Sequence record: NC_061447.1
Strand: one strand, 5' to 3'
DNA length: 64,000 nt
In this document: positions 7,845 through 57,419 of the stretch, one piece after another
How positions within the stretch are numbered: position 1 is the first letter of the stretch
How the letters are laid out: each line of letters starts with the position of its first letter
Position numbers and translations under genes: made by a program
The notes under the pieces: generated by a model
What the model saw: the letters and a program-made list of their open reading frames with translations, nothing else
Told to the model about the DNA's origin: nothing
The model's database searches: none

Positions 7845-7864
7845 ATTCTGCCTGAGATTAAACG

Positions 7865-19313: not shown

Positions 19314-19327
19314 TAAGGAAAACTAAA

Positions 19328-39247: not shown

Positions 39248-39712
39248 ATGATGAACGAAACTCAAGCAACCCCATCTGATATCGAATTGCAGGACCGCAT
39301 GATGGACGCCGCTGTCCAGAAAGTTATTGAACTGACCCCTGAGTGGATTGACGTGGCAGCCGCAGGCCTTCGCCTGTACCTGACCGTGTGTGACCAGCTT
39401 GGTGGTCCGATTCCTGAAATGCGTTTCGTACACAACAACCGTCCATGCAAACTCCAGTTCAATTTGAACGAAGTTGCCGAAGGTTCTGAGTTTGTTGCGA
39501 ACGATATCGATCATGCCAAGCAGATGGAAATCTGTGAGGCGATTCTCGCTACAGCCGAAGCGAACGAAGATGGTCACTCGCTAATGGACCTTGCGATTTG
39601 TTCTGGCCGCCTGTTTATGATCGGCTACGATGGTCTTGCTGGCACGGTTAGCAAAGTTTGCTTCCGCTTCGCCAAAAAGAACTACGTCATGAATCTGGTT
39701 GAGGCTAAATAA
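39248..39712 (+). CDS. Hypothetical protein
   Basis: GAGGAG RBS. Confidence 0.8.
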   Translation: MMNETQATPSDIELQDRMMDAAVQKVIELTPEWIDVAAAGLRLYLTVCDQLGGPIPEMRFVHNNRPCKLQFNLNEVAEGSEFVANDIDHAKQMEICEAILATAEANEDGHSLMDLAICSGRLFMIGYDGLAGTVSKVCFRFAKKNYVMNLVEAK

Positions 39713-39713
39713 C

Positions 39714-41630: not shown

Positions 41631-42461
41631 ATGCCTAATACTTCACGCCCTAAGACAGAAGACAAATTCTCCCGCGCTCGCGCCGCTAAGAACTCGCCAA
41701 AGCGCGTTAAAGGCAAAAAGCCTAGCGAGCGTCCTGAGAACGAAGGTGAGAAGAAACGCCCAACACCACGCGGGCCGTCTTCCGCTAAACCACGTCAACT
41801 GCCTCCTGGCTACGGTTACAAATCGAAAGCTACGGGCGAACGTCTCCCGGACACGCAGACGAAAATTCGTGACGAGGAACGCGTGTTCAATCTGGTTCAC
41901 GCAATCTTATCAGCATGGAAGGTTACGACTGACGCGGAAGCGGTTGCTACGGGTATCATCAAAGTGTCTCGTCGTAAGATTGAAGGCGCCTTGCGTGACC
42001 TCAAGAATACGCGCTTCACTAAAATCCCGTCGCTGGTTAACGATATTCTGACCGATATGGACCTCTACAAAGAGTTCGGTCAGTGGGTGTATGTCGAACA
42101 CGATTCTCCTGATTGGATTTTCGTTCGACTGCCTGAAAACAGTACGCAAGTGATTCGTGCTGATATCAGTTCTGATCGTATTGGCGAAACGTCTGCTGCC
42201 GTGACAACCAGAACAGAAGTTCTGCTTGACGGTGCGCACCTCGAAGAAGATGAAGAGGAGATTCCTGAGAACGTCGAGTATGGCGACGAAGAAGAAGAAT
42301 CTGACGAAGAAGAAGAATCTGACGAAGAAGAAGATGATAACGCCGCTGCTGTTGCTAAGATGCGCAAGTATCTGGTAGCTGCGCAAATCATCAAGCCAGA
42401 AGCTGCCGTCAAGCTGTCTGACAATGACGTAGTGAGGTTGTATAGCTACTACCGAGCGTAA
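41631..42461 (+). CDS. Protein with a basic disordered N-terminus, an acidic tract and a C-terminal HeH-like module
   Basis: Lys/Arg/Pro-rich N-terminus; EEEESDEEEESDEEED; MRKYLVAAQIIKPEAAVKLSDNDVVRLY. Confidence 0.85.
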   Translation: MPNTSRPKTEDKFSRARAAKNSPKRVKGKKPSERPENEGEKKRPTPRGPSSAKPRQLPPGYGYKSKATGERLPDTQTKIRDEERVFNLVHAILSAWKVTTDAEAVATGIIKVSRRKIEGALRDLKNTRFTKIPSLVNDILTDMDLYKEFGQWVYVEHDSPDWIFVRLPENSTQVIRADISSDRIGETSAAVTTRTEVLLDGAHLEEDEEEIPENVEYGDEEEESDEEEESDEEEDDNAAAVAKMRKYLVAAQIIKPEAAVKLSDNDVVRLYSYYRA

Positions 42462-42472
42462 GCACTAACGAG

Positions 42473-42499
42473 CGGGGCAGTGAAATATAGCTGCCCTGC
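42473..42499 (+). terminator. Stem-loop (terminator-like)
   Basis: GCGGGGCAG-TGAAATATAG-CTGCCCTGC; no clear U-tract. Confidence 0.5.
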
Positions 42500-42513
42500 T
42501 ATCTGCGAAGTAT

Positions 42514-42567
42514 GCAGAAAACTGGACAAAATCGTGGTTGTTATCTGCCGGCCACCTATGCTATAAT
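42514..42567 (+). promoter_or_regulatory. Class A promoter
   Basis: GCAGAAAACTGGACAAAAT ... TGC-TATAAT at 42562, spacer 33. Confidence 0.85.
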
Positions 42568-42623
42568 AGATTCAGACGCAATAGTGCGTCACACACAAAA
42601 ACATATACTGAGGAGTATTAATC

Positions 42624-44255
42624 ATGGCACGTATCGAAACTAACACTAACCTGGTTGGCAAAACTATCGTCCTGCTGAACGGCACCAAATCTAAAATCGA
42701 AGATGCAATCGCGTCTGGTTATAAAGTGAAGGGCCTGACCAAGCGCATCGCCACCCGCTGCATCATCAAAGAAGGCTCTCACTTCCGCGAAATCGAACGC
42801 ATGAACATGAGCCAGCTGGAAGATACAGGCGAAGGTTATGTTAAGCTGAAAGATGCGAAAGCGTCTGGCAAGAAAACTGCCAAGAAAGAAACTGCCGCGC
42901 CGAAAGCGTCTGGCAAGAAAGCTGGCTCTAAGAAAACTTCTGGCAAGAAAGACGCCAAGCCGACGAAAGACAAAGAGCCTAAAGTTCGTCGTAAATCTTC
43001 CGAAGAGCAATCCGAAGATTACCAGAATCTGGCTCACGCTATCATCAAAGGCGGCAAAGCCAAGCCTGCTGTTGAGATCGAAGCTGTAGACGAGTCGCTG
43101 ACTGATGCAGTTGCTCAACGTCTGGCCCATTACGTGCTTAACTCTGACGTTGCAAAAGTGTGCGCTGATAACAAAACGCCGATCGCTAACGCACTGGACG
43201 TTACTTACGGTGCTGAGTATGCGCCTGAAGGTAACGTGCTCCAGATTACGCTGAATCTGCAATACGCTGCGCCTGTGAAAACTGTTGCTGCTGCGCCTGA
43301 GCTGGACGAAGCTGTGGCGAAACGTGCTGCCAAGCTCGCTGCTAAGAAGATTGGCAAAGTGCTGGCGAAAGCAATCAAAGCGGCCTTCGACCTTGAAGAC
43401 GCGAACGACCTGCTGCCTGGTACCGTGTTGACCAGCGAAGGTACTGAGTTCGTGTTCGTCGGTGAGTCTGCGAAACATGCAGGCAAAGCGCTGATGTATA
43501 GCGCCGACACTGACGGCTTCAAATCATTCGGTGCCGACAAACTGGCCGACTTCGAAATCGTCGCTGATGAAAGCGAAGAAGAGGAAGAAGATGAAATTGA
43601 AGATGAAGATGAAATCGAGGAGGAAGAAGAAGAGGAAGAATCCTCCGAAGACGAAGAAGACGGTGAAGAAGACGATGGCGAAGAAGAAGACGGCGAACCG
43701 CAAGATGCCGAATACGAGTTCGTCGCAGTCGATGCTGATCAACTCGAACTGGTCAACAAGAAAGTAACCGCCAAGTATCACGCTTCACTGGCTGAACGCT
43801 TCGGTGTTGACGAAGAAGCTCTGGCCCCAGGCCTGATGTTAACTGACGGCGAAACTACTTTCGCTTACCTCGGCTGCGATAGCAAAGGCGGTCTGCTGGT
43901 TATCGACCTGTCTGATGATGCAGACGAAGATGATAACGTGCTGGTGTATAGCAAAGCCGATATCAAAACTCTGACCGACTTTAGCCCTGTGATCGATAGC
44001 GGTGAAGCTGACGATTCAGAAGAAGAAGACGGTGAAGAAGAAGACGGTGAAGAAAACGACTTCGAAGATGAAGAAGATGGCGAAGAGGAAGACGGCGAAG
44101 AAGAAGACGACTTCGAGTTTAACGACCTGCCGTCCGAAGATCTGGAAGACCTGTCCGAAGACGAACTGCGTGACCGCGTTGTTGAAGCCGGCCTGACCAC
44201 TGTGCGTAAAGCTGAGAACATGAAAGCCGCACAACTGCGCAAGCTGCTGAAATAA
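42624..44255 (+). CDS. Multidomain protein with long acidic tracts, a duplicated beta domain and a C-terminal HeH-like module
   Basis: 543 aa; internal repeat LLPGTVLT..G.EF.F.G / LAPGLMLT.G.T.FAYLG; SEDELRDRVVEAGLTTVRKAENMKAAQLRKLL. Confidence 0.9.
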   Translation: MARIETNTNLVGKTIVLLNGTKSKIEDAIASGYKVKGLTKRIATRCIIKEGSHFREIERMNMSQLEDTGEGYVKLKDAKASGKKTAKKETAAPKASGKKAGSKKTSGKKDAKPTKDKEPKVRRKSSEEQSEDYQNLAHAIIKGGKAKPAVEIEAVDESLTDAVAQRLAHYVLNSDVAKVCADNKTPIANALDVTYGAEYAPEGNVLQITLNLQYAAPVKTVAAAPELDEAVAKRAAKLAAKKIGKVLAKAIKAAFDLEDANDLLPGTVLTSEGTEFVFVGESAKHAGKALMYSADTDGFKSFGADKLADFEIVADESEEEEEDEIEDEDEIEEEEEEEESSEDEEDGEEDDGEEEDGEPQDAEYEFVAVDADQLELVNKKVTAKYHASLAERFGVDEEALAPGLMLTDGETTFAYLGCDSKGGLLVIDLSDDADEDDNVLVYSKADIKTLTDFSPVIDSGEADDSEEEDGEEEDGEENDFEDEEDGEEEDGEEEDDFEFNDLPSEDLEDLSEDELRDRVVEAGLTTVRKAENMKAAQLRKLLK

Positions 44256-44286
44256 GATCGACCTGTAATACGAAAACTTGAAGTAA

Positions 44287-44311
44287 GATGCGGTTCAGAC
44301 AGAGCCGCATC
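44287..44311 (+). terminator. Stem-loop between the paralogous genes
   Basis: GATGCGG-TTCAGACAGAG-CCGCATC. Confidence 0.5.
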
Positions 44312-44343
44312 TCTGACAACTAAGCTGATTGAGGAATCACACT

Positions 44344-45576
44344 ATGTCAAACGCAAATGCAAACCTGTTGAATGCCCGTGTACGTCGTCTGGACGGCACC
44401 ACCACTTTCATCAACAAAGTAAACGCTAACGGTTATAGCACCGACGCGAAAGGTCCGCAGATTCCGGTGAAGCGTATCGTGCTTGCTGGTAAAACTCTGA
44501 AAGAGATCGAACAGCCGTATGCGAAAGCCGAGCACGTTCTGATTGACGGCATCACCGTTAAGCTGAACAAGCCCCAGCAGAAAGATCTGCGCAACGACGA
44601 AATCGACGTTGACACTATCAAGCCTGACTTCGGCAATTTGGTCTACATCGACCCTGAGACAGGCAAGCCTGCTGTGAAAACTGCGAAAGTGAAAGGCGGC
44701 GTGAAAGCTACCCGCGAACGTAACAAAGACAAGCGCACCAAGAAAGAGCGTAAAGCAGAAGTCGCCGCGTCGAAAGACGAAATCGACATGCTGCCGTCTG
44801 CTAAAGTTGATCGTAAAGCTGAACTGGCTGGCATCATCGACGCAACCATCGCCGACGCGAATACGAAAGACCGTCGCAAGATGTTGAGCGAAGCGTTTGA
44901 CATGGACTGGAAAGATGTGAAGAAACACGGCGGTGCTGGTGTTATCAAACACATGGGCCGCAAAGCTGCACAGACCGCAGTGAATCGCCTGAACGCCAGC
45001 GTAACGCAAGACACGTTCATCAAGCAGATGCCTGTCGCGTTGAAACGTCTGATTCAAGACGGCGCCCTGACGTTGAATCGTTCGCAGATTGAGCGCGTAC
45101 TTAGTGCGCTTGACCTCGACGTGAAATTCTACGATGTTGCCATTCAAACTCTGATGGGCAACCTCAAGCTGTCTCTCGATAAGTCCATCGAGAACCCGAA
45201 AGTGAAATCAAAGAAGGCAAAGCATAAACTTGCCGTGCCTACATACGCTTCGGAAAAAGAAATCACCAAGCGTATTCGCAAGATGACGATCAAGCTCATT
45301 AAGCCAAGCAAGAAAGATATGCCAGCGCTGAAAGAGCACTCGAAAGCATCGAAAGCGGTTATCGCTAAAAAGCTGGGTATCAAATCTTCTGACGTGAAGC
45401 GCGGCCTGATCGTCTACAAGCCGAATGGCGTTGAGTTGATGTTCCTGACTTGCGATATGACGGGTCCTGTCTTCATCGACAAAGACGGTGCTGAATGTGT
45501 GATGGCCCATGCTAATGTTGACAGCACGTTCAACCTGACCCTGGGCAAAACCTCTGAACTGGATGCCAGCGTATGA
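44344..45576 (+). CDS. Lys-rich protein, paralogous to 42624..44255
   Basis: GAGGA RBS; shares N-terminal (GY....I..K.I...G...EIE) and C-terminal beta domains with the upstream acidic protein. Confidence 0.85.
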   Translation: MSNANANLLNARVRRLDGTTTFINKVNANGYSTDAKGPQIPVKRIVLAGKTLKEIEQPYAKAEHVLIDGITVKLNKPQQKDLRNDEIDVDTIKPDFGNLVYIDPETGKPAVKTAKVKGGVKATRERNKDKRTKKERKAEVAASKDEIDMLPSAKVDRKAELAGIIDATIADANTKDRRKMLSEAFDMDWKDVKKHGGAGVIKHMGRKAAQTAVNRLNASVTQDTFIKQMPVALKRLIQDGALTLNRSQIERVLSALDLDVKFYDVAIQTLMGNLKLSLDKSIENPKVKSKKAKHKLAVPTYASEKEITKRIRKMTIKLIKPSKKDMPALKEHSKASKAVIAKKLGIKSSDVKRGLIVYKPNGVELMFLTCDMTGPVFIDKDGAECVMAHANVDSTFNLTLGKTSELDASV

Positions 45577-45953
45577 CAAACAACGAAATCGTTTTGTCTG
45601 GTGTATTCGCTCAAATCTATTCGCGGCTGACAACGGCCGCGATACTCAAAACCTACGTGTACTACTCTGACCTGTCACCTGCGGTGTTTGGTCTCCAGCT
45701 TAACGTGAGCACGGCACAGTATCACGCGCTGTGGGAATTTGTAGTGAAGACCATGCGTCTTGATATTGCTAACGGCCGCCCACCGTTAGCTGCTCTTTAT
45801 GTGTCGCGGGCAAACGACGAGAAGGCTCCTGCGAAGAAGTTCTTCTCTGAATACTACAAGCTCACTGGGAAGCGCCTGACACTTGATGAATGGCAAGCAC
45901 TCGTTGAACATGTGTGGAAATCATATGAGCCAGATCTTCGGGAGCCATCATGA
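45573..45953 (+). CDS. Hypothetical protein
   Basis: ATGA overlap. Confidence 0.75.
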   Translation: MTNNEIVLSGVFAQIYSRLTTAAILKTYVYYSDLSPAVFGLQLNVSTAQYHALWEFVVKTMRLDIANGRPPLAALYVSRANDEKAPAKKFFSEYYKLTGKRLTLDEWQALVEHVWKSYEPDLREPS

Positions 45954-46411
45954 AAAAGTCGAAAGTTGTAATTAGTCGTGGCGGCTACAGGCCGTCTTCA
46001 CCAGAAGAAGCTCAGAAGCTGGTAGCTGAGTTTATTCTGGGTACCATCGGAGTTAACCCTACTGTTATCAGCCAGCAAATGTTATTGAACGTTGCGAACT
46101 ACAATTACCTGACGTCTATTGCTGACACGGGTAAGGCAAATCAAGCGAACCAGAGCGCATTGCATAAAACTGTAAAAGAACTTAATGCGTTCTGTAGATT
46201 GCACAAGATTCCACTGGGATTACTAATTATGCCGCATACGTCGGCCAGTGATTATGCTGGTGACGAGGTTGTAGCGATTCCTTGGGAGCATGTGCGCACA
46301 AACGCATTGAGCCAGTCTGCCATCGAATCTCTGTTTGAAGTAGTTGTAGCCGATGGTTATCCGCAGTTTGTGACTGATGCGAAAACAGTAGAGGGATACA
46401 ATGTTTTATGA
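45950..46411 (+). CDS. Hypothetical protein
   Basis: ATGA overlap, GGGAG RBS. Confidence 0.75.
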   Translation: MKKSKVVISRGGYRPSSPEEAQKLVAEFILGTIGVNPTVISQQMLLNVANYNYLTSIADTGKANQANQSALHKTVKELNAFCRLHKIPLGLLIMPHTSASDYAGDEVVAIPWEHVRTNALSQSAIESLFEVVVADGYPQFVTDAKTVEGYNVL

Positions 46412-47681
46412 CCACGTATTCAACCACGACCAGAGACAGTTGCTCTTGTCTGTGGCTGAATCTAAATATCTGGTGCGGCTTGACTGCCCCGACTATTTGA
46501 AAAAGTCGAAACATGCAATTGAAGTTCGGCACACAGTAACCAACCGCGGCGAGCAACGCCGTAGCGGTACAATCACAACTGCATTCGTACCTCGCATTCA
46601 TTCCGCAACCGTACAGCGGCTTGTGCGTGAAGTACGTGACACCCAAAGCAAGAGCGCGTCGTCCAGTCTGGCTGCGCTGTTTGAGCTAGGGCTTGGTGTA
46701 CCGAAGCAACATGACATTGCGGTGTACCTGAAAGACTACTGCCAGGAAAACGATAAGAAGGGTGTGGGTATCAAGTATATCCGCAAACTGATTAACGAAT
46801 ACCACCGCAAGCATCGTCATAGCTTCGCGGGAAGTCGCTGGTTGATGCCTGCCGCTTACACGGCGAACATGCTCAACATGCAGTCCTTCATTCATCTGAA
46901 AGAAGACGGCTATGCGAACAAGGTGAAAGTGCCTGATGGTATTCCTGTCGTGTTCATCTACCAGAACACGAATCATGAGCAAGCCACATTTACTTTGTGT
47001 GACGCATTCACGATAAGCCCGCTTGGTTATCCGATGCCGTTCGCACAGATAGCGTTACGACCTGAGTTCAAAGCTGCACCGAAAGAGTTCAAGTCGAAAG
47101 CGCTGCGTGGCAAGAGCATGTATGCGATGGTCATGGGCATGGTTTACTGGACAGAAGGTGATTCTGTTTCTAACTTCCGCGAACTGCAAGATATCGACGA
47201 CGACCCGTACCTGACGTTGCTGTCAAACGACAAGTATGCTGATCGCCGCAGCCCTGAATATCAGGCACTGCTGGACGAACGTGTTGCGTTGAACGAGCAG
47301 GCGCCGAAGTGGAACGCAGTGATTGCCAAGTACGGTAGCACGACTCGAACGCTCAAGCCTGAGCAAGCCGAGAAGCTCCAGAAAGCTAACGACTTCTTCC
47401 AGAAGCGTAAAGAGTTCATGGATGCTTTCGACAAGTTCGAGAAGAAAGAGAACCACCATGCAGCGAAGAAGTTCGCCGCAGCCCGTGCTCTGTTTGCCGC
47501 CGTAGATTGTGGTACTATCATGGACCGCAGTACGTACATGTCGGTATCGTCTGGTCTTGACGATGTGAATAAAATTCTCACTCGGTGGGGATTCACTACA
47601 GTCAACACTGTTAATAGTAGTTTGAAGAAGTCTATCCTTACTTATGACCGCAAAGGCGCAAGTCGCGTCTGGTCACTGTAG
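46401..47681 (+). CDS. Hypothetical protein
   Basis: 426 aa ORF, GAGG RBS. Confidence 0.8.
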   Translation: MFYDHVFNHDQRQLLLSVAESKYLVRLDCPDYLKKSKHAIEVRHTVTNRGEQRRSGTITTAFVPRIHSATVQRLVREVRDTQSKSASSSLAALFELGLGVPKQHDIAVYLKDYCQENDKKGVGIKYIRKLINEYHRKHRHSFAGSRWLMPAAYTANMLNMQSFIHLKEDGYANKVKVPDGIPVVFIYQNTNHEQATFTLCDAFTISPLGYPMPFAQIALRPEFKAAPKEFKSKALRGKSMYAMVMGMVYWTEGDSVSNFRELQDIDDDPYLTLLSNDKYADRRSPEYQALLDERVALNEQAPKWNAVIAKYGSTTRTLKPEQAEKLQKANDFFQKRKEFMDAFDKFEKKENHHAAKKFAAARALFAAVDCGTIMDRSTYMSVSSGLDDVNKILTRWGFTTVNTVNSSLKKSILTYDRKGASRVWSL

Positions 47682-47708
47682 ACAACCTTATCTGAGGAGA
47701 TAACACAA

Positions 47709-50700
47709 ATGTCTAATAATAACCTGGGCGCTGCTGCAACATTCGGTTCTGAGACTCAACGCCAGATCGCTGATGAACAACGTCGCGCTAACTCGTCCGA
47801 GTCGGGCCACATCAACAAATGTACCATCGTTGTTTTGACTTCGCTTAACGCACACGGCCGCTTCTCTTATATGAGCGCCAGTGAGCAACTGCACGAAAAG
47901 CAGATCGAAGGCAAAGTGATGGACCGTCTGCCAAACCTGATCGAACGCGCATCTGGTCCTTCGACTGACCAAAACAGCGCGTACTACATCCTGCATCCAA
48001 ACAACGGTGTGCCTACTCGTATCGACGAGCGCATCAAAGTGGGTGAAGGCGATGCAGTCATCGTTTCGTATACTGTAAATAAAGCAGTGTCGGAGATGCA
48101 CGGCAGTCTGTCGCTTGCTCTGTTCAGTGCTGGCGAAACAGATCTCGCGGACCTCGCAGCCGAGTTTGGCGTTCACTCCATCTCGATTGTCGAAGAAAGC
48201 AAAGCTGGTCCGTACATCCGCGCATTGGCCGCGCAGGTGGAAAATCTGCAAACTGTAAATATCACAAGCATTGATGAAACTGACGGCGCTTTCGATAAAG
48301 CAGTAATCGACTACAGCGCGTTGCCGGCCAATCCTGTTACTGTGCTGTCCGGCGCTGTGCGTACTTTCATCATGCAAACCATTGGCGGCGAGATCGTTGC
48401 TGCAATTCCAAATAACGGAGAACTGAACGTGAAACAACCTACTAACGCAACGCCGGTTAATCTGAACGAAGACTTCGATGCCGAAGACGAAGTTGTAGAT
48501 CAGAACGAAGGCAGCGAAGAAGAAGTCGCGGCCGGCACGGACCTGTTTGGCTACAAGGCTGAAACCCTGAGCGTCGAACAAATGTCCGAAGCGCTTGAAG
48601 CTATAGGCTACACGCTGGACGCTATGAACGAAGACGGCATCCGCGAATCGTTCGAAACTGAGCAGGCCATCTGGCTGGAAAAAAGCGAAAGCGGTGACGA
48701 CTCCGCTGATGACTCTGCGGAAGACGAAGAAGAAGAGGAAGAAGATGGCGAAGAAGAAGACTTCGATGCTGTTCAGTTCCTCGCTTCTGTGCTGGTCGCC
48801 GAAGAGCTTGATCGCGCCGGTCTGAAAGTTCTGATCCGCACTCAGGATATTCCGGTGATGAAGAAAGACACCGTTGAAACTCTGACTGCGAAACTGCTGG
48901 AAGTTGTTGAAGGTGCAACCGAGCAGGAAATGATTGAACTGCTGAACACCTTCGTCGGCGCTCTGCAAGAGCACGAAATCGCCTGCCCTAACATGCTGGC
49001 CGCTCTGTCTTCTGACGAAGAAGACGAAGAAGACGAAGAAGAATCCGATGAAGAAGAATCGGAAGAAGACGAGTCCGAAGACAGCGAAGAAGAAGACGAA
49101 GACGAAGACGAAGTGCAGCACCAGATCGACGCTGTTACCGATCCTCTCGACTACTTCCAGTTTGCTGGCGGTATGCTGACTGCCGAACAACGCGCTGCCG
49201 CTGTTACTGCTATGGGCGAAGACGCCTCAACGATGACCATCGTTCAGGTAATGAAAGCGTTCACCCGCATCCAGGGTCAGGCCAACGAAGAAGTTGAAGC
49301 CGAAGAAGTTGAAACCTCTAACGCCGAGCAAGTTGTTGAGCTGCTGCGCCAGTACGACGACGCTACAATTCAGCACGTAGCAGAAAGCCTGGGCATTCTG
49401 GTCGATGAATGCGAAACTGCTGACGAAATGATCGAAGCGATCATTAACGGCGGTAGCGAAGATGACTTCGCGGCTGTTGAAGAAATCGCAACCAACTACG
49501 GTGTTGACCTGTCAGAGATTGCTGACGAAGACGGTCTGTCGTTTGTTGACGCGCTGCTGGCTGTGCTGCCTGAGTTCCTGGCCGATGACGAATCTGCCGA
49601 TCAGGAAGACGAAGGCGAAAGCGACGAAGAAGCCGAAGATGAAGAAGGCGACTTCGTGGATGACGAAGAAGAAGACGAAGAAGACAGCGCCGAGCAGGCT
49701 GCCGAGTCTGAAACTAACGATCATCTGAAATTCGTTAAAGACGTTGACACCACCAACTCCGTCGGCCCGATGCTGTCTGTCGATATGGACCAGACGCTGA
49801 TCATCAACTTCACTCTGACTGACGGTAACACCTACGGTCCGATTGAAAGCGAACTGTCTGACGTTGGCGGCTTTAACTACCGCTACCCGTTCAATCTGGG
49901 TAAACCTGGTAAAGCGCCTGGCTCTATGCACCTGCCAGCTCAGTCTATTCTGGATATTCTGGAGCGCGTCGGTACTACTCGCTTCCTCGCTAACCCTAAA
50001 ACGTTTGATATTGAAACGTGGGCGGAAAGCCTGGAGCAGACCATCAAGCAGGACCTCGATGCGAACCTGTACGCCGGCCGCATTGAAGACGGCATGGACC
50101 CTACCGAAGCGGGTCTGATTGTTGGTGACTTCATCGACGAAGAAGAAATGGCTCAGGCTGCTGAGATGGGCTATCTCGACGAAGACGGTCTGGACGAAAT
50201 GCAGGGTGATCATCTGCCGCTGGCTAGCCTGTACAGTGCTAAGTCTCGCGTTCGTCCTGTTCAGGTTGACACCGCACACGTTGCGCTGCACACCACCGTG
50301 ATGAACGTAGCTGTCCCAGGCTTCTGGGGTGACTCCGAAGTTTCACGTCTGGTGCAGGCTGCTGTTAACCGCGTTATCTCTCTGGCTGAAACAGTCGAAG
50401 GTATCAAAGTGTACGCTGGCTTCACTATGGAGTCTGCTGCTCTGCTGAACAACGACCGCCTGTTCGAAGCGCTGACCGCACTGCGCGCCATGGAAAACGT
50501 ACAGTCCTACTCTGCTGCTGACGCTGCGAACTTCGACGATGCCGAAGACGTGATCGAAGTAGCAAGTGCGCTGGACTCTCGTGACCTGCCGCTGGCTGTG
50601 CTGTCTGGTGGTCTGGCTGCTGCAACGTTCGACAACGGCGGTGACCTGACCGTGCTGGTGCTGTGCTCTCCTGAGGACGAAGAAGACGAGTCCGCAGAAG

Positions 50701-50720
50701 ACGAAGGCGACGACGAGTAA
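47709..50720 (+). CDS. Very large, highly acidic multidomain protein with HeH-like modules
   Basis: 1003 aa; several poly-D/E tracts; ELDRAGLKVLIRTQDI..MKKDTVETLTAKLL and YDDATIQHVAESLGI...ETADEMIEAII. Confidence 0.9.
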   Translation: MSNNNLGAAATFGSETQRQIADEQRRANSSESGHINKCTIVVLTSLNAHGRFSYMSASEQLHEKQIEGKVMDRLPNLIERASGPSTDQNSAYYILHPNNGVPTRIDERIKVGEGDAVIVSYTVNKAVSEMHGSLSLALFSAGETDLADLAAEFGVHSISIVEESKAGPYIRALAAQVENLQTVNITSIDETDGAFDKAVIDYSALPANPVTVLSGAVRTFIMQTIGGEIVAAIPNNGELNVKQPTNATPVNLNEDFDAEDEVVDQNEGSEEEVAAGTDLFGYKAETLSVEQMSEALEAIGYTLDAMNEDGIRESFETEQAIWLEKSESGDDSADDSAEDEEEEEEDGEEEDFDAVQFLASVLVAEELDRAGLKVLIRTQDIPVMKKDTVETLTAKLLEVVEGATEQEMIELLNTFVGALQEHEIACPNMLAALSSDEEDEEDEEESDEEESEEDESEDSEEEDEDEDEVQHQIDAVTDPLDYFQFAGGMLTAEQRAAAVTAMGEDASTMTIVQVMKAFTRIQGQANEEVEAEEVETSNAEQVVELLRQYDDATIQHVAESLGILVDECETADEMIEAIINGGSEDDFAAVEEIATNYGVDLSEIADEDGLSFVDALLAVLPEFLADDESADQEDEGESDEEAEDEEGDFVDDEEEDEEDSAEQAAESETNDHLKFVKDVDTTNSVGPMLSVDMDQTLIINFTLTDGNTYGPIESELSDVGGFNYRYPFNLGKPGKAPGSMHLPAQSILDILERVGTTRFLANPKTFDIETWAESLEQTIKQDLDANLYAGRIEDGMDPTEAGLIVGDFIDEEEMAQAAEMGYLDEDGLDEMQGDHLPLASLYSAKSRVRPVQVDTAHVALHTTVMNVAVPGFWGDSEVSRLVQAAVNRVISLAETVEGIKVYAGFTMESAALLNNDRLFEALTALRAMENVQSYSAADAANFDDAEDVIEVASALDSRDLPLAVLSGGLAAATFDNGGDLTVLVLCSPEDEEDESAEDEGDDE

Positions 50721-50733
50721 TATCGTCTGATTG

Positions 50734-50760
50734 AGCGGCTCGAAAGGGCCGCTTACTTTT
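50734..50760 (+). terminator. Rho-independent terminator
   Basis: AGCGGCTC-GAAA-GGGCCGCT-TACTTTT. Confidence 0.8.
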
Positions 50761-50777
50761 CTTGGGGATCTGTAAAC

Positions 50778-51608
50778 ATGACACAAGAAGTAGACCACGA
50801 AGCTAACATCGTACAGATGATTAGTACCCGTGACGAGAAAATCCGCGAACTGACCAACGAGCTTGAAGAAGCTATTGGTGATAAGAAAGATGTGGAGAAC
50901 GTCTTAGAGGATGAAGTAAGCCGCAGCACTGTGCTGCGTGTCGCACTCAGACGTAAAGTACGCCAACACGCCGTTGAAATCGCACTGCGCGATGAACGCA
51001 TTAAAGAAGTGGTTGGCTTCTGCAACGAACAAACAGCCGAGCTTAAAAAGCTGCAAGCTGAAAACGAATCTGTAAAGAGTAAACAGAAGCAAGCGAATCC
51101 GCTGCCGTTTGCTCTGCATATGATAATGTGTGCTGGCATTAGCCACTATCACAATGTCGTACAGCAACTCGCACACGGTTCTGTAAACCGTGAAACGAAC
51201 AAAGTGGCCAGAGCGCTTGCTGATTTGAACCGCACCGACGTGGTAGTCAAACAGCCTTCTCTGTATCGCTCTGTCGCAATGTATTGTTCTGCTGTTGGTG
51301 CCGACGCTCCTGCAAGCGCTGCGCTGCTGGGGGAACTCAATAATTACATCCGAGCGAACATCGACCTGTTCCTCAAAGACACCCAGTATGAACAGTCACG
51401 TAAGATGTTACATTGGGTGTGGGAGGCGAAGAATAACTCTGCCCACATGGGCTTCGCCGCACGTAACATTTGTCAGGCCTTCGACTGGTTGCCTATCGCA
51501 TTTGAAAGCGATGCTATTGACCATCTCGAAGATGACGATGATTACGAAGAATTGTTCTGCGAAACACTTCTGAAAATTTGTACGCATCTGATTCGTGATA
51601 GCTTTTAA
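50778..51608 (+). CDS. Hypothetical protein with an N-terminal coiled coil
   Basis: Heptad-like IRELTNELEEAIGDKKDVENVLEDEV; class B motif directly upstream. Confidence 0.8.
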   Translation: MTQEVDHEANIVQMISTRDEKIRELTNELEEAIGDKKDVENVLEDEVSRSTVLRVALRRKVRQHAVEIALRDERIKEVVGFCNEQTAELKKLQAENESVKSKQKQANPLPFALHMIMCAGISHYHNVVQQLAHGSVNRETNKVARALADLNRTDVVVKQPSLYRSVAMYCSAVGADAPASAALLGELNNYIRANIDLFLKDTQYEQSRKMLHWVWEAKNNSAHMGFAARNICQAFDWLPIAFESDAIDHLEDDDDYEELFCETLLKICTHLIRDSF

Positions 51609-51707
51609 TAATCTGTAAAAGTTACCTGCAATCGAAACTGTAAACACTAATTGAAGTTCGAACCGAGCGATACGCTCACACTTTATAAATCCCGGAGCAT
51701 TAAACAA

Positions 51708-52253
51708 ATGGCTAAAGTAACTAAAGGCACTTCACTGGCACCTACCCTGGCTTCTCGCATCGCTAAAAAATCTGGTTCCATTAGCACCTCTAAAGTGAAG
51801 CCTGCTGAACTGCCGCACGACATTCTGATCGAAACAGTTCAGGCTGTTGAGCTGATTGGTTTCATTACTGACCGCACCGATAACAGCGTGACCATCCGCC
51901 ATAAAAAAGGCCACGGTTCTTCTGCGCAGATCATCTCAACCTTCGGTCCGAACCAAATCCTGTCTATCCTGGGCGACGCCGGTCAGCACGGTAGCGTTAC
52001 TGCTCTGGTTAACGCGCCGGTTCGTGAGTACAAAGGCTTCACCGTTAAATACGTCGGCGCCATGATTCACGCAACCTCTGTCGAAACCGGCGAAGTGATT
52101 CACATCAACACTGCTCTGCCTGGCTTCAACGTTCGTCCTACTGTAAACGAAAACGCGGCCGCTAAGAAGTACGGCACCGCTGCTCCAACCAAAGCTAAGA
52201 AAGGCGACAAAGCAGACAAGCCTGCGAAGCTGGTGAAGAAAGTAAAAAAGTAA
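51708..52253 (+). CDS. Beta-rich protein with Lys-rich termini (possible Sm/Hfq-like fold)
   Basis: GGAG RBS; VELIGFITDRTDNSVTI...QILSI pattern; PAKLVKKVKK tail. Confidence 0.8.
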   Translation: MAKVTKGTSLAPTLASRIAKKSGSISTSKVKPAELPHDILIETVQAVELIGFITDRTDNSVTIRHKKGHGSSAQIISTFGPNQILSILGDAGQHGSVTALVNAPVREYKGFTVKYVGAMIHATSVETGEVIHINTALPGFNVRPTVNENAAAKKYGTAAPTKAKKGDKADKPAKLVKKVKK

Positions 52254-52285
52254 TAAAGTCTGACGAAGACTTTTAACTGACTTTC

Positions 52286-52357
52286 TGAAATCTGTAAACA
52301 TTAAGTATGCAGCGAGATAAAATGTTCTCGCTGCCTGTCTCTCGAAATCTGTAAATC
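52286..52357 (+). promoter_or_regulatory. Tandem GAAATCTGTAAA motifs (class B) upstream of the polyacidic gene
   Basis: GAAATCTGTAAACA (52287) and GAAATCTGTAAATC (52344); a third GAAATCTGTAAATA at 59391. Confidence 0.6.
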
Positions 52358-52402
52358 TTAATTGAAGCAACATCGCTTCTAATCAAACAGGAAATAAATA
52401 TC

Positions 52403-53212
52403 ATGGCTAAAGCTGCTAAAGCAACCGTTAACACCGCATCTCTGGTTCTGGCTAAAATGCTGGGTGTTGTAGTGGAAAACGCGACCGACAAAGAAATCGC
52501 CGCGCTGCTCACCTCTGCCGGCCTGACCGTGTCTGGTGGCAAAGTTGTTAAAGCTGACAAAGGCGGTAAAGCTGCTAAAGGCAAAAAGCCTAAGGCACCA
52601 ACCGTCGCTGAAATCGTCGCTGCTGTGAAAGAAGAAGACGAACTGGATATCTCCGGCGTCGATGAAGACACTCTGCGCGAAGCAGTTGTCAAAGCCAAGC
52701 TGTCCACCGCTAAGAAAGCGAAAGCGCTGGACGAAGATGAACTGCGCGAACTGCTGAACGATAACCTGGGTGGCGAGTCCGAAGAGGACGAAGACGAAGA
52801 AGAAGAGGACGAAGACGAGGACGAAGACGACTCGGACGACGAAGATGAAGACGGCGACGACGAAGACGAAGACGACGAAGACTCTGATGAAGAGGACGAC
52901 GAAGACGACGACGAAGACGGCGACGACGAAGATGAAGATGAAGAGGACGACGAAGACGAAGAAGAAGACGACGAAGATGAAGACGAGGACGAAGATGACG
53001 AACTCGACCTCGACTCCCTCGACGAAGACGAACTTCGCGCCCTGGTAATCGAACACAAGCTGGCCACCGCCAAAAAGGCGAAGAAGATGGACGAAGATGA
53101 ACTGCGCGAACTCTGCGAAAGTCACTTCGGTGGTGAAGACGACGAAGACGAAGATGAAGACGAAGACGACGAAGACTTCGACGATGAAGACGAAGACGAA
53201 GACGACGAGTAA
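52403..53212 (+). CDS. Polyacidic disordered protein with two HeH-like modules
   Basis: A near-pure D/E tract of tens of residues flanked by DEDTLREAVVKAKLSTAKKAKALDEDELRELL and DEDELRALVIEHKLATAKKAKKMDEDELRELC. Confidence 0.9.
   Translation: MAKAAKATVNTASLVLAKMLGVVVENATDKEIAALLTSAGLTVSGGKVVKADKGGKAAKGKKPKAPTVAEIVAAVKEEDELDISGVDEDTLREAVVKAKLSTAKKAKALDEDELRELLNDNLGGESEEDEDEEEEDEDEDEDDSDDEDEDGDDEDEDDEDSDEEDDEDDDEDGDDEDEDEEDDEDEEEDDEDEDEDEDDELDLDSLDEDELRALVIEHKLATAKKAKKMDEDELRELCESHFGGEDDEDEDEDEDDEDFDDEDEDEDDE
52780..53000 (+). repeat. Low-complexity (GAC/GAA/GAT)n repeat encoding poly-Asp/Glu
   Basis: Directly visible GACGAAGAC-type triplet runs. Confidence 0.9.
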
Positions 53213-53261
53213 TATCTTCTGACCGGCGCGCCCCTCTAGTTCTCTGTGAATGAGCGAGGGG

Positions 53262-53352
53262 CAAATATTCGAGAAAACTTTTCGAATATTTTTGTAAAAA
53301 GTTTCAAAATTCCTTGCAGACGTATGTTGAATATAATAATGTACGTCTACAG
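53262..53352 (+). promoter_or_regulatory. Promoter region with two inverted repeats upstream of the H1-like gene
   Basis: AAATATTCGA-N9-TCGAATATTT (about 53262-53290); TGCAGACGTA...TACGTCTACA flanking TATAAT at 53332. Confidence 0.6.
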
Positions 53353-53428
53353 GGAAACAAACCTGAACAAATTTATCTTTTCATCCAGCGGTGAAAACGC
53401 CGCATCAAAAACAAAGTAAGGAAATCGT

Positions 53429-53947
53429 ATGTCTAAGAAAGCAATCAGCGGCCTGAACAAAGAAATCCGTGCCCTGGACAAATCTGAAAAAAATCTGGTT
53501 AAAACTGCTGCCAGCCTGACTAAAGAAGCCGAAGCGATCGCACAGCGCCGCGCCGGTCTGACCGCTCAGGTTGAAGCTCTGTCTGCTGACGGCGCTGCTC
53601 CAGCTAAAGCTGCTAAACCAGCGAAAGCTGAGAAAGCCGCTAAGCCTGCTAAAGCAGAAAAAGCTGCTAAGAAAGCAAAAGCTGAGAAGCCTGCTAAAGC
53701 TGAAAAAGCTGGCAAGAAAGCTAAAGCAGAAAAACCTGCTAAAGCTGAGAAAGCCGCTAAGCCTGCTAAAGCAGACAAAAAAGCGAAAGCTGAAAAGCCA
53801 GCCAAAGCTGATAAAAAAGCTAAAGCTGAAAAATCCGCTAAGCCTGCTAAAGCAGACAAAGCTGCCAAGAAAGTGAAAGGCGATAAAAAAGCCAAAGGCG
53901 GCAAGCAGAAAAAACAAGAAGAAGACTTCGACTTCGAAATGGAATAA
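53429..53947 (+). CDS. Histone H1-like (AlgP/Hc1-type) Lys/Ala-rich protein with an N-terminal coiled coil
   Basis: Many PAKA(E/D)K(A/K)AK repeats; N-terminal heptads; short acidic C-terminus EEDFDFEME; AAGGA RBS. Confidence 0.85.
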   Translation: MSKKAISGLNKEIRALDKSEKNLVKTAASLTKEAEAIAQRRAGLTAQVEALSADGAAPAKAAKPAKAEKAAKPAKAEKAAKKAKAEKPAKAEKAGKKAKAEKPAKAEKAAKPAKADKKAKAEKPAKADKKAKAEKSAKPAKADKAAKKVKGDKKAKGGKQKKQEEDFDFEME

Positions 53948-53980
53948 GCAAGTAATCGCGCACTAGCGGTCACTTGATCG

Positions 53981-54012
53981 AAAGGGCAGCGCTGACGAGC
54001 GTTTGCCCTTTT
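53981..54012 (+). terminator. Rho-independent terminator
   Basis: AAAGGGCAGCGCT-GACG-AGCGTTTGCCCTTTT. Confidence 0.85.
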
Positions 54013-54044
54013 GTCTTATCTGCACGAATTTTTGAGGTAATGCC

Positions 54045-54530
54045 ATGTCTGCCGAACATCTGCTTAACGACGACCTGCCTGACGATACTCGACCGTCAAA
54101 ACAAACTCCAGAAAAACCTTCCTATTACGACCTGATGACGCTACGCCTTGAAGCTGGTGCTCGTCTTGCTCGCTCTCTCAAAACCCTGTGTGATGCTAAC
54201 GTGATCTCAAATGCCGTCAATGAACCTCTGCTGAAACAAGCTCTCGATAAGGCAGAGAAGTATTGGGCTGAAATTTGCATGGGTCAAATACCTGCATCCG
54301 ATAACGGCCTGCTGAATGACGTCAAGCTCAGGGACGACCTACCTGCCTGTGTCGAAGCGTTCCGCATTGTTGTGATGGAACATGCTCAACGTGAAGCATT
54401 GGAGCGTGAGTGCCGTAATATGATTGACCACGTTGGTGGCTTCAAACTTCTCACTCAGCCTCAAGTGCTGCATATCGAAACCAAACACGTCTGCAATGGG
54501 GATTGCGATCATGACTCAGAAACTGTCTGA
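54045..54530 (+). CDS. Hypothetical protein
   Basis: GAGG RBS. Confidence 0.75.
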   Translation: MSAEHLLNDDLPDDTRPSKQTPEKPSYYDLMTLRLEAGARLARSLKTLCDANVISNAVNEPLLKQALDKAEKYWAEICMGQIPASDNGLLNDVKLRDDLPACVEAFRIVVMEHAQREALERECRNMIDHVGGFKLLTQPQVLHIETKHVCNGDCDHDSETV

Positions 54531-55251
54531 ACAAATCAACCGCTATTTTAATCTCATGGAAAAAATCCGTGAGCAAATGTACCGCGTCCTGCCTGTCAGT
54601 GACCGCTACTTGTGTGTCGTAAGTTTCAGCACACAACTCCAGGCACTCCAGTGTGTACTGGTAAGCAAAGCATCTTTGATGGAAGCAAAGCTGATCGAAG
54701 GTCTGACTGGTCAGGAGCTGGTAACGTATGGCCAGTATCTGCAAACTGCCGAGCAGTGGGTTGCTAATGGTATGCAGGACGATTATCCGTTCACCCAGGA
54801 TAAAGACGTGTATGCCGAATACCGCAGCCTGACGCGTGACGAATCCCAGCCTGTGCCTGAAATGGATGACGAAGAAGACCTCGACATACAGGAGCTGGAT
54901 AATCTGCGCACCTCAATTCTTTGTGCGGACAAAGCCACTCTGGTGCAGATGTACGTAGATGAAAATCTCGGCACAAAAGGGAAAGCTGCCGACATGGATG
55001 CGGAGCAATTGCAAGAAGCTCTGTGTGAGCACTACGGTCTTAACCCTGATGTTCCTGTCAGACTCGTCGATGTTGTTGGCGAAATGGTTAAACGCTTCGA
55101 AAGCCTTCCGAATCATGCTGCCCTCAAAGAAGTTGACCTCTTGACAAAGGAAGAACTGCTTAGTCTTGCAGGCGCGTGGGGTATTGAAAAGACCGCACAC
55201 GAGCACACCATGCGCTCTCTTATCAAGGGCTATCTGCTGCGCCGTACCTAA
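54511..55251 (+). CDS. Hypothetical protein with two HeH-like modules
   Basis: DKATLVQMYVDENLGTKGKAADMDAEQLQEALCEHYG and LTKEELLSLAGAWGIE...MRSLIKGYL. Confidence 0.8.
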   Translation: MTQKLSEQINRYFNLMEKIREQMYRVLPVSDRYLCVVSFSTQLQALQCVLVSKASLMEAKLIEGLTGQELVTYGQYLQTAEQWVANGMQDDYPFTQDKDVYAEYRSLTRDESQPVPEMDDEEDLDIQELDNLRTSILCADKATLVQMYVDENLGTKGKAADMDAEQLQEALCEHYGLNPDVPVRLVDVVGEMVKRFESLPNHAALKEVDLLTKEELLSLAGAWGIEKTAHEHTMRSLIKGYLLRRT

Positions 55252-55388: not shown

Positions 55389-57419
55389 ATGGCCAAAGCG
55401 CCTAAAGCTGCCAAAGTTAAAAAGAAAACGGGAGATGGGTCCGAACAAGAAGGATTCATGATTGCCGAAGGCCTTGATGGTATTCGTCTAAATCCCGGGA
55501 TGTACATGGGGGAACGCGGTGCCGATATGGCTTACCGTGCGGTTAAAGAGCCAGTCGATAACGATTACGATGAATACATCGCAGGTCGAAACAAACTTAT
55601 CGAAGTGGTCATCGACTACGATAACGACCTGAACGTTGTTGCCGATATGGCGAAAGGTATTCCGACTGACTTCAAGAAACTGAAAGACGGTTCGAAAGAA
55701 ACGATCATGACCGCAGCATTTAGCCGAGCACACGCTGGTGGTAAGTTCGATGATAAAGCATATAAGACCTCTGCTGGTACTCACGGCGTAGGCGTTGCAG
55801 CACTGAACGCAATCTCAAGTCGCCTGCGCGTATGGTCAATGTACAAAGGCGGTTGTGCGTATCAGATGTGGGAGTGCGGTGTCGCCAAGTCTGGCAAAGA
55901 CCCGAAACAGGTTAAAGCAGTAGACAAAGATGTTATGAGTCTGCTGCGTGAAAAGAAACACAGCAAGTACGGTACGATTGTCGCATGGACCCTCGACCAG
56001 ACTGTTGTGTCTGCTGACGTACAGCGTGGTAAAAAGCTGCCGAAGAACTATCGTCACGCTGCCCCAGACCCAGCACAGCTTGGCTCATGGCTGCGTAACA
56101 TGTCTATGCTCAACCCGGGCCTTGAAGTGCGCCTGACGTTGATCAAGAAAGGCAAGCGCAAAGAGTTCACCTTCCTCAACAAGAAAGACTTGGTGCACGT
56201 TGTCAAGACGATGGTTGAAGAACGCGAGCTTGGCTCAGTTGGTAAGCCGTTCATCTTCAAGAACGACAACATCACCGCTGCGCTGACGTGGACCGACCAT
56301 GCAGACACAGACAACTTCTTGTCCTTCGTTAACACCAGCCCGACAATTGACGGCGGCTGGCACGTTGTTGGTTTCCGTGACGCGCTGTTCGAAGCGATCA
56401 AACCTTTCATGAAAGAGCAGAAAGGTAAGAGCAAGAAGAAGCAGGGCTTCAAACAAGAAGACTTGCTTATTGGTCTGACTGGTATGTTCGACTGGCGTAT
56501 GCACGGTGCTCAGTACACCTCGCAGGTTAAAGACAAGCTGGCGAGCCGTGTCGAAAAAGAAGTGTACGAAATGCTGAAAGATGCTTTCGTGAAATACTTC
56601 AAAGAGAATAAGAAGGTCGCAACGACGATCATCAAACGCGCCGAAGCGATGAACAAGGGACGTGAAGAACTCAGCGCCGTCGTGAAGTCTATGGCTGACA
56701 CGAAGAAGAAGCTGAAAGGTAACTCACTACCCGCTGACCTGATCTCTGCGCTCAAGTGTAAGCCGCATGAGCGTGAGCTTATCGTTGTAGAAGGTGACTC
56801 TGCTGGTGGTACTGCGAAACACGCACGTAACCCTGACTATCAGGAAGTTATGCTTGCTGGTGGTAAGCCGCTCAACGGTCTGAAAGCCTCACTGGCTGAC
56901 GTGCTCAAGCACAAAGAAGTGCAGGGCATGTTAGTGTCTGTCGGTGCTGACCTGAAATCGTTAGACCCGAAAGCAGAAGCGCCGAAGTTAAGCACGAAGA
57001 ATCTGCGTGTCGGCAACCTGCTGTTCCTGATGGATGCTGACCCAGACGGCTTCCACATCGCAACGTTGTTCCTCGGCGTTATCTATCGTCTGCTGCCTGA
57101 CCTGATGAAAGAGGGCCGCGTGTGGATCGTAGATGCTCCGCTGTATAACGTGATGCACAAAGGCATTCACTACGGCGGCATGACGTTTGAAGAATGCCGA
57201 GCGAAAGCACCGTCTGCTGTAAAAGATAAAGAAATCGTTCGTGCAAAAGGTTGGGGTGAAGTTGAACCTGACGTGCTCGAAGCGATCTCATTCAATCCGA
57301 AGACTCGTCGCTTGATTCGTGTGAACCCGTTCACTAGCGTTGAGCAAGAACGTTTCTTCCGTGGTGTGCTGGCAGAAGATGCTGTCCATCGTCGCCGTCT
57401 GTTGGGTCTGGAGGAATAG
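55389..57419 (+). CDS. gyrB: Type IIA DNA topoisomerase subunit B (GyrB/ParE-like)
   Basis: IRLNPGMYMG, E..DN, HAGGKF, GTHGVG, EGDSAGG, GKPLN, DADPDG.HI, KG.GE. Confidence 0.95.
   Translation: MAKAPKAAKVKKKTGDGSEQEGFMIAEGLDGIRLNPGMYMGERGADMAYRAVKEPVDNDYDEYIAGRNKLIEVVIDYDNDLNVVADMAKGIPTDFKKLKDGSKETIMTAAFSRAHAGGKFDDKAYKTSAGTHGVGVAALNAISSRLRVWSMYKGGCAYQMWECGVAKSGKDPKQVKAVDKDVMSLLREKKHSKYGTIVAWTLDQTVVSADVQRGKKLPKNYRHAAPDPAQLGSWLRNMSMLNPGLEVRLTLIKKGKRKEFTFLNKKDLVHVVKTMVEERELGSVGKPFIFKNDNITAALTWTDHADTDNFLSFVNTSPTIDGGWHVVGFRDALFEAIKPFMKEQKGKSKKKQGFKQEDLLIGLTGMFDWRMHGAQYTSQVKDKLASRVEKEVYEMLKDAFVKYFKENKKVATTIIKRAEAMNKGREELSAVVKSMADTKKKLKGNSLPADLISALKCKPHERELIVVEGDSAGGTAKHARNPDYQEVMLAGGKPLNGLKASLADVLKHKEVQGMLVSVGADLKSLDPKAEAPKLSTKNLRVGNLLFLMDADPDGFHIATLFLGVIYRLLPDLMKEGRVWIVDAPLYNVMHKGIHYGGMTFEECRAKAPSAVKDKEIVRAKGWGEVEPDVLEAISFNPKTRRLIRVNPFTSVEQERFFRGVLAEDAVHRRRLLGLEE

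Follow-up and report, generated by a model that had tools for sequence, protein, structure and literature searches.

A conserved cluster of oppositely charged, low-complexity proteins upstream of the topoisomerase II genes in the jumbo phage pEa_SNUABM_33

The final 64 kb of the record of Erwinia phage pEa_SNUABM_33 (NC_061447.1; this whole stretch of 64,000 nucleotides is the window analysed here) contain, at 41631-55251, a cluster of genes for proteins of extreme and opposite charge, in which the gene of a polyanion of 269 amino acids (aa) is directly followed by that of a 172-aa polycation. This cluster is a lineage-conserved, non-structural module of the 'Lupandier' jumbo myoviruses, represented in Alexandravirus, Sasquatchvirus, Salmondvirus, Baikalvirus and phage NCTB. 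The best reading of its composition and conservation, to which we give a probability of about 0.35, is that its multivalent proteins of opposite charge would act in the replication phase as a module that organises the phage DNA, the polyanion buffering the polycation.

The region 41631-55251 corresponds to positions 240868-254488 of the pEa_SNUABM_33 record (megablast, 100% identity). This phage is a jumbo myovirus of 263,237 bp and belongs to the genus Alexandravirus; its lineage is the 'Lupandier' group of 'hairy' myoviruses, together with Lu11, PaBG, NCTB, the Dickeya JA phages, Y3, Yoloswag and Alexandra (PMC7412058, PMC6143709). Close relatives are vB_Ea_2910A, at 98.8%, and, at 93%, Dickeya phage AD1; numerous further pEa_SNUABM phages align with the region at 79-84% (megablast). 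All 13 genes of the cluster are annotated as encoding hypothetical proteins, and our literature search found no publication describing the charged cluster.

Composition of the charged cluster

A sequence-only reading of this DNA had drawn attention to a protein made largely of Asp and Glu, its Lys-rich neighbour, acidic proteins of 1003 and 543 aa and further Lys-rich proteins. All of them are encoded where that reading placed them, and the members of the cluster, referred to below by their start positions, are as follows:

41631-42461, plus strand: 276-aa protein with a Lys/Arg/Pro-rich N-terminus, a folded middle and an acid tract at aa 216-238; orthologues in AD1 and JA29.
42624-44255, plus strand: 543-aa acidic multidomain protein, net charge -75 (composition, AlphaFold2 model, 35 homologues).
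44329-45576, plus strand: 415-aa basic protein, net charge +28; the start annotated in AD1 is equivalent to 44344.
45573-45953, plus strand: 126-aa conserved protein; orthologues in AD1, Y3 and JA29, the 129-aa protein of NCTB being matched on position and size alone.
45950-46411, plus strand: 153-aa conserved protein (phrog_33033).
46401-47681, plus strand: 426-aa basic folded protein of an orphan family, net charge +16 (AlphaFold2, Foldseek).
47709-50720, plus strand: 1003-aa acidic protein, net charge -190, whose folded segments are separated by four acid tracts (composition, orthologues).
50778-51608, plus strand: 276-aa protein with a coiled-coil-like N-terminus (sequence).
51651-52253, plus strand: 200-aa basic protein, net charge +16 (181 aa if translation starts at 51708), consisting of a beta-rich core followed by a Lys-rich C-terminal tail.
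52403-53212, plus strand: 269-aa polyanion, 48% Asp/Glu, net charge -101 (composition, module profile).
53429-53947, plus strand: 172-aa polycation, 30% Lys/Arg and 28% Ala, isoelectric point 10, net charge +27; gene directly after that of the polyanion.
54045-54530, plus strand: 161-aa acidic protein; AD1 has an annotated gene in the equivalent position.
54424-55251, plus strand: open reading frame of 275 aa (246 aa from 54511, the start equivalent to that of AD1), with one helix-linker-helix module at aa 169-206 of the long form.

The polyanion is composed of a Lys-rich linker and two copies of a helix-linker-helix module (aa 86-126 and 206-246); its acid tracts span aa 123-205 and 242-269, and its C-terminal end is acidic with one Phe. 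The polycation comprises a helical or coiled-coil N-terminal part of ~55 aa, Ala/Lys/Pro/Glu repeats and a conserved acidic-aromatic C-terminal tip; its imperfect repeats correspond to tandem arrays in the DNA, with periods of 18-81, at 53601-53865. The product of 42624 starts with a small N-terminal domain, followed by a Lys-rich linker (aa 79-129), folded segments at aa 150-310 and 365-450, acid tracts at aa 313-359 and 461-499, and a helix-linker-helix module as its C-terminus (aa 505-543).

These compositions are exceptional within the window. Eight or more Asp/Glu codons in a row are found 56 times, always inside 43617-53208, versus none in 100 shuffles; 9 of the 13 acid tracts of the window lie inside the cluster, and its proteins rank at the top of the window for both the fraction of charged residues and charge segregation. 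Beyond the window, where Asp/Glu runs as well as the promoter-like motif described below were surveyed as DNA pattern counts over loci, such runs are rare: three in the small gene after the portal gene, one beside the head protease and 19 in the gene of the single-stranded DNA-binding protein (SSB).

Other acidic proteins are encoded in the window outside the cluster. Those of 19262-19945 (net charge -32), 28385-29587 (-23) and 39699-40409 (-30) have short acid tracts, and that of 6693-7460 (-35) is acidic without a tract under the criterion used. Elsewhere in the genome, gp143 (record positions 105479-107482; 667 aa, annotated as 'ATPase'), located between the head protease and major capsid genes, contains an acid run, as does gp008 (positions 7849-8235 of locus L008), the small gene after the portal gene; both may be candidates for a head scaffold or core.

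Conservation of gene order and net charge

The genes are kept in the order 543-aa acidic, ~415-aa basic, 126, 153, 426, ~1000-aa acidic, 276, ~190-aa basic, polyanion, polycation and one or two small genes. AD1, Y3 (Sasquatchvirus), JA29 (Salmondvirus) and Yersinia phage fHe-Yen9-02 all have the genes in this order ahead of those for topoisomerase. NCTB shows the same order upstream of gyrB, with an acidic 632-aa protein, proteins of 129, 455 and 420 aa (the last acidic), a basic one of 171 aa, the polyanion and the polycation; no counterpart of the 415-aa basic protein was identified at the NCTB locus. The Pseudomonas phage PaBG keeps the internal order of its counterparts, but these lie ~10-16 kb downstream of its topoisomerase genes. 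In tblastn searches, the families of 47709 and 46401 were found in an identical set of 57 phage records, and the product of 51651-52253, the best conserved among the small members, was found in 60 phage records, including those of PaBG and NCTB.

The co-occurrence and synteny expected if these proteins form a system are thus present in every relative examined, and in each of them the gene of the polyanion is directly followed by that of the polycation. This adjacency is strict, while the linkage of the cluster to topoisomerase II is loose: the position next to the topoisomerase genes emphasised by the sequence-only reading applies to AD1, Y3, JA29, fHe-Yen9-02 and NCTB, but not to PaBG. In the window, a gyrB-gyrA pair does follow the cluster:

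55389-57419, plus strand: ATPase/Toprim subunit of a type IIA topoisomerase (GyrB-like) with a Lys-rich N-terminal tail (Pfam DNA_gyraseB 1e-27, Toprim 1e-9, DNA_gyraseB_C).
57741-59390, plus strand: breakage-reunion subunit of a type IIA topoisomerase (ParC/GyrA-like) with a Lys-rich N-terminal tail of ~48 aa (Pfam DNA_topoisoIV 4e-58).

The gap between the two genes is 321 nt, and a 100-aa gene is annotated there in Y3. The A-type subunit is seemingly split into a 549-aa piece (57741-59390) and a 290-aa piece (61481-62353, annotated as topoisomerase IV subunit A in AD1), separated by a conserved gene for a 424-aa protein (59739-61013) and spacers of ~0.8 kb.

The net charges of the polyanion and of the polycation fall within narrow ranges across the relatives:

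Polyanion: window -101, AD1 -105, Y3 -90, JA29 -97, NCTB -100, PaBG -93.
Polycation: window +27, AD1 +28, Y3 +30, JA29 +27, NCTB +28, PaBG +31.

The length of the polyanion varies from 150 to 294 residues despite this constancy, and the PaBG protein has no similarity to that of the window by BLAST. Likewise, the 1003-aa protein and its orthologues have net charges of -190, -193, -190 and -183 at identities of 27-55%, and the 415-aa basic protein and its orthologues have +28, +28, +31 and +32. The orthologues of 42624 have net charges of -78, -56, -59, -118 and -60. The short acidic C-terminal tip with an aromatic residue that ends both the polyanion and the polycation is kept from the Erwinia phages to PaBG and NCTB. 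Net charge is therefore held while the sequence drifts, which indicates selection on charge itself.

Shared modules, folds and homology searches

An all-against-all comparison, followed by an iterated hidden Markov model (HMM), led us to define a repeated module of ~40 residues. Two copies are present in the polyanion and one each in 42624, in 54424-55251 and in a further gene:

36828-38363, plus strand: 511-aa protein, net charge -20, with one 40-aa helix-linker-helix module (aa 356-396, HMM i-E-value 9e-18) followed by an acidic stretch; orthologues in AD1 and Y3. This gene sits upstream of the range 41631-55251 given by the sequence-only reading.

Including orthologues, the module totals 23 copies, four of them in the NCTB polyanion. 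The HMM found no copy in a further 50 kb of the pEa_SNUABM_33 genome, or in the acidic proteins of 6693-7460, 19262-19945, 28385-29587 and 39699-40409. Nor was it detected in 47709 or 41631, where similar-looking stretches are visible by eye only. In the AlphaFold2 model of 42624 the module is predicted as two helices joined by a short linker, the helices of the model lying at residues 512-521, 527-531 and 535-542, with a predicted local distance difference test score (pLDDT) of ~94.

This module had been described as HeH in the sequence-only reading. The repeated unit is real, but its assignment to the HeH family falls below threshold: among 11 copies of the module, two matched the Pfam model SAP (best E 0.015) and a single copy matched Ish1 (E 0.026), all below the curated cut-offs, and a PDB profile search with the module gave nothing relevant. 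'HeH-like' is a fair description of its shape, and membership of the family is plausible. The module resembles the SAP, HeH, LEM and Ish1 motifs in its length of ~35-40 aa and may resemble them in its two predicted helices with a short linker; it differs from them in being placed within acid tracts, and it is known here from sequence and model.

The model of 42624 consists of small folded domains separated by long charged stretches predicted to be disordered, namely a Lys-rich linker and two acid tracts of low confidence. At its N-terminus, this protein has a domain related to those with which the 415-aa basic protein and PaBG gp131 start (hhalign E ~7e-5), so that acidic and basic members of the cluster share ancestry. 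A Foldseek search of the model against the PDB gave no significant match; the best ones were small PWWP, Tudor, Agenet and SH3 barrels (best E 0.59), and we did not accept a kinship with chromatin readers on this basis. The product of 46401 is predicted to fold confidently (mean pLDDT 79.7, predicted template modelling score 0.73). The best PDB match of its model was 7k72_A, the adenylation domain of a bacterial NAD-dependent ligase, with E 0.017 and a template modelling score of 0.22-0.29, and phage ligases appeared at E >1; this likeness is marginal and may serve as a lead only. The profile of the 46401 family had no match in the PDB, and the family is tiny: a search of 1.84 billion representative proteins gave only 22 relatives. 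Ten of its distant relatives contained no informative Pfam domain, and a Foldseek search against BFVD returned uncharacterised proteins only, one of them from Dickeya phage JA13 and the other two presumably the counterparts in NCTB and Lu11.

Scans of all cluster members against Pfam, PHROGs and NCBIfam revealed nothing functional, only families of unknown function or sub-threshold matches. PDB sequence searches with 47709, 53429 and 51708 gave nothing meaningful, the sole match being that of 47709 to the acid tract of RanGAP1; 53429 had no match there at E <=0.1. The first 58 residues of the polycation had no matches in a word-indexed homologue search. The polycation had been proposed to be histone-H1-like, and its composition, rich in Lys, Ala and Pro, agrees with that description. 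The resemblance is in composition only: no Linker_histone, Hc1 or HC2 match was obtained in Pfam at E <=0.1, and we rejected membership of these families.

The C-terminal domain of linker histone H1 and prothymosin-alpha form a high-affinity disordered complex of a polycation and a polyanion. The phage pair resembles them in that two adjacent genes encode low-complexity proteins of opposite charge, one rich in Lys, Ala and Pro and the other mostly Asp/Glu. In contrast to H1, the polycation lacks the globular domain of linker histones and any homology to them, and instead has a coiled-coil-like N-terminus and an acidic-aromatic tip; the polyanion, in turn, carries helix-linker-helix modules, and the phage pair is known from its sequence alone. 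Chlamydial Hc1/Hc2 and the Hc1-type proteins of phages are also Lys/Ala-rich, of prokaryotic or phage origin, and thought to compact DNA, but 53429 lacks their Pfam domains. Such H1-like proteins of the Hc1 type are noted, without functional data, in large aquatic 'moraphages', and the passages of that report examined here mention no acidic partner gene for them (PMC12619734).

The data on modules and homology also bear on another interpretation of the cluster, namely that its genes have no joint function and encode unrelated accessory or replication-linked proteins, whose charged tails act, for example, as solubility or spacing elements and whose pairing is incidental. Acid tracts and Lys-rich tails do occur outside the cluster (19262, 28385, 39699, SSB, gp008 and gp143), and most of the members have no detectable relation to one another. 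However, the polyanion and polycation genes are adjacent in all six lineages, including PaBG, where the cluster is relocated, and the range of net charge is narrow despite a twofold variation in length. Furthermore, the module is restricted to cluster members and common to four protein families, and an N-terminal domain is common to an acidic and a basic member. We consider this interpretation rather unlikely.

Timing, genomic context and possible roles

A promoter-like motif, ATCTGTAAA with the core CTGTAAAT, occurs throughout the genome on the coding strand only. Copies are located 24-86 nt ahead of the start codons in the genes for DNA polymerase, the clamp loader, the NAD ligase, a ParB-like protein, a sigma factor and several proteins of unknown function; none was found preceding the capsid or sheath genes. 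Exact copies of ATCTGTAAA in the window are located at 2569, 50768, 51068, 51611, 52290, 52347 and 59394. Within the cluster, two copies each precede 51651 and the polyanion gene, and one lies 10 nt ahead of 50778:

50732-50755, plus strand: terminator-like stem-loop 3' of the gene for the 1003-aa protein (10 pairs, 6 of them G-C, with a T-rich tail).
50768-50776, plus strand: promoter-like motif ATCTGTAAA (motif match).
51611-51644, plus strand: two copies of the promoter-like motif upstream of 51651 (exact at 51611, one mismatch at 51636); position kept in Y3 and JA29.
52290-52355, plus strand: promoter-like motif in tandem, at 52290 and 52347, ahead of the polyanion gene; position kept in Y3 and JA29.

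The motif was not found in the NCTB locus. An identical core is present upstream of the SSB gene in the GenBank record of Lu11, where it is annotated as 'putative middle/late promoter'. The association of the motif with replication genes suggests that the cluster is expressed during the DNA-replication phase. pEa_SNUABM_33 encodes a sigma factor, and the use of the host RNA polymerase is therefore likely.

One further promoter candidate was detected ahead of the cluster's large acidic gene:

42538-42567, plus strand: sigma-70-like promoter candidate before 42624, with 10/12 consensus matches and a TG ahead of the second hexamer (consensus match alone).

This candidate is weak, as sigma-70-like sites are no commoner in the region than in shuffles (consensus scan). 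It would fit a role in host take-over, in which the polyanions act as DNA-like decoys that draw off host nucleoid proteins or DNA-targeting defence proteins, and the polycation compacts or silences the host chromosome. DNA-mimicking acidic phage proteins are an established class, and the extreme acidity of the cluster proteins, their conserved net charge and their location among non-structural genes are in line with this idea. Known DNA mimics, however, are compact and folded, with a patterned surface charge, unlike poly-Asp/Glu tracts of 80 residues; moreover, the pairing with a polycation is conserved and DNA enzymes of the phage itself bear charged tails, both of which point to transactions of the phage's own DNA. 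We regard a decoy function as unlikely.

The cluster is encoded apart from the head and tail modules. The minus-strand block of the genome (~45-184 kb) contains the head and tail genes plus some replication genes, and the plus-strand block comprises the genes for a Holliday-junction resolvase, an RNA ligase, the sigma factor and SSB, many small genes, the cluster, topoisomerase II, DnaB, terminase and portal, the last two ~10-15 kb downstream of the cluster on its own strand. The counterparts of the cluster proteins in PaBG, gp124-131, were not among the 14 abundant virion proteins identified from gel bands (PMC7412058). No published virion proteome was found in our literature search for AD1, the JA phages, fHe-Yen9-02 or pEa_SNUABM_33. 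Gene position, promoter class and the PaBG proteome argue against the possibility that these are simply fibre or decoration proteins of the virion.

A broader association with the particle, with the polycation packaged along with the DNA as an internal charge neutraliser and the acidic proteins forming a scaffold or core or the virion 'hairs', appears improbable on the same evidence, even though several observations fit it. The lineage has a 'hairy' myovirus morphology whose proteins are unassigned (PMC6143709), the motif is labelled 'middle/late' in Lu11, the terminase and portal genes lie nearby on the same strand, and the acid tract of 42624 has a weak PHROG match to a head scaffolding family (E 0.004). 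We rejected a head-scaffold identity of 42624, as this match falls on a low-complexity tract. Besides the separation from the head and tail modules and the virion data for PaBG, a candidate scaffold exists elsewhere, in the protease-adjacent gp143/gp144 beside the capsid gene.

Charged appendages on DNA enzymes accompany the cluster. The SSB of pEa_SNUABM_33 (record positions 196710-197954, ~1.3 kb upstream of window base 1) has a C-terminal end of ~150 residues made of alternating poly-Asp and poly-Lys blocks, and the SSB of Lu11 (positions 1186-2469 of locus L014) has a block-charged tail of a similar kind. Lys-rich N-terminal tails are present in both topoisomerase II subunits (55389-55440 and 57741-57885), in the large terminase (positions 2483-2545 of locus L008) and in the ParB-like protein (30146-30205 of the same locus); the topoisomerase subunits of NCTB have basic, Lys-rich N-termini too. 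Acidic C-terminal tails of SSB serve the docking of partners. The C-terminal ends of the polyanion and the polycation are likewise short, acidic tips with an aromatic residue, which may be a resemblance of kind only.

Together, these observations are best accommodated by a module that organises the phage DNA during replication. Its parts, strongly and oppositely charged proteins with much disorder, would be the polycation of ~+28, with a coiled-coil part and a Lys/Ala-rich tail, the polyanion of ~-100 with its helix-linker-helix modules, two large acidic multidomain proteins and several basic proteins with small beta domains. Made in the DNA-replication phase, these proteins would act jointly on the phage DNA through multivalent electrostatic contacts. 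The polycation would coat or bridge DNA; the polyanion would buffer or chaperone the polycation, and its own modules may attach it to DNA. The large acidic proteins could serve as scaffolds, and enzymes whose tails are rich in Lys or block-charged (topoisomerase II, SSB, the ParB-like protein and terminase) would be concentrated at the same place. Composition, conserved order and net charge, gene position and the common promoter-like motif are observed; we infer the time of expression, the binding to DNA and between members, and any condensate.

Several points weigh against this proposal. No homology was detected between any member of the cluster and a characterised protein that binds DNA or acts as a chaperone or scaffold. 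The module reaches SAP and Ish1 at sub-threshold level only, so that its binding to DNA is putative. The promoter class is derived from the motif alone, and, given the 'middle/late' label in Lu11, expression may also be late. The PaBG proteome consists of Coomassie-visible bands, in which polyacidic proteins, which stain poorly and yield few tryptic peptides, could be missed. Finally, charged low-complexity tails are a common habit of the lineage and could contribute to solubility or to affinity for DNA with no higher-order assembly involved.

A stronger form of the proposal is that the cluster builds a membraneless, charge-driven replication compartment, where the polycation and the phage DNA would coacervate with polyanionic scaffolds, enzymes would enter by means of their tails and the access of host nucleoid proteins or nucleases would be limited; we find this quite doubtful. 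The absence of chimallin, a check named in the sequence-only reading, was found in the relatives examined: a tblastn search with phiKZ gp54 gave 102 records, none of them from Dickeya or Yersinia phages, so that AD1 and the JA phages lack it. The search gave 18 records from Erwinia phages, and those among the matches listed come from phages of 271-275 kb in a separate lineage; pEa_SNUABM_33 is not among the matches listed and has no such gene in its annotation. Phase separation in phage infection was shown recently for the transcription condensate of SPO1 Gp27 (PMC13401047). The cluster would share with this condensate and with the chimallin nucleus of the Chimalliviridae the concentration of DNA transactions by phage-encoded proteins and a modular architecture of folded and disordered parts; its proteins, however, have no homology to either, and the cluster is known from its genes. 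If true, a charge-driven compartment would do what the chimallin shell does, in a second and independent way.

The interpretation offered by the sequence-only reading is partly supported: its comparative predictions hold, and its mechanistic claims of compaction, chaperoning, coacervation and shielding from nucleases are hypothetical. Pending evidence, our analysis suggests that the cluster is a newly described example among charged DNA-organising or condensate-forming proteins.

In summary, the means by which large phages that lack a protein shell keep 260 kb of DNA organised and protected while it replicates are an open question, for which the cluster provides candidate genes and the enzymes with charged tails a ready list of possible clients. 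Its evolutionary signature is unusual, with net charges of ~-100 and ~+28 kept while the sequence is lost. If these proteins do not act together, they would constitute a well-defined marker of the lineage and a set of extreme low-complexity proteins under constraint. If they act together on DNA, they would represent a chromatin-like or condensate-like organisation in a prokaryotic virus, built from oppositely charged disordered proteins, and a natural test case for the conservation of charge as a selected trait.

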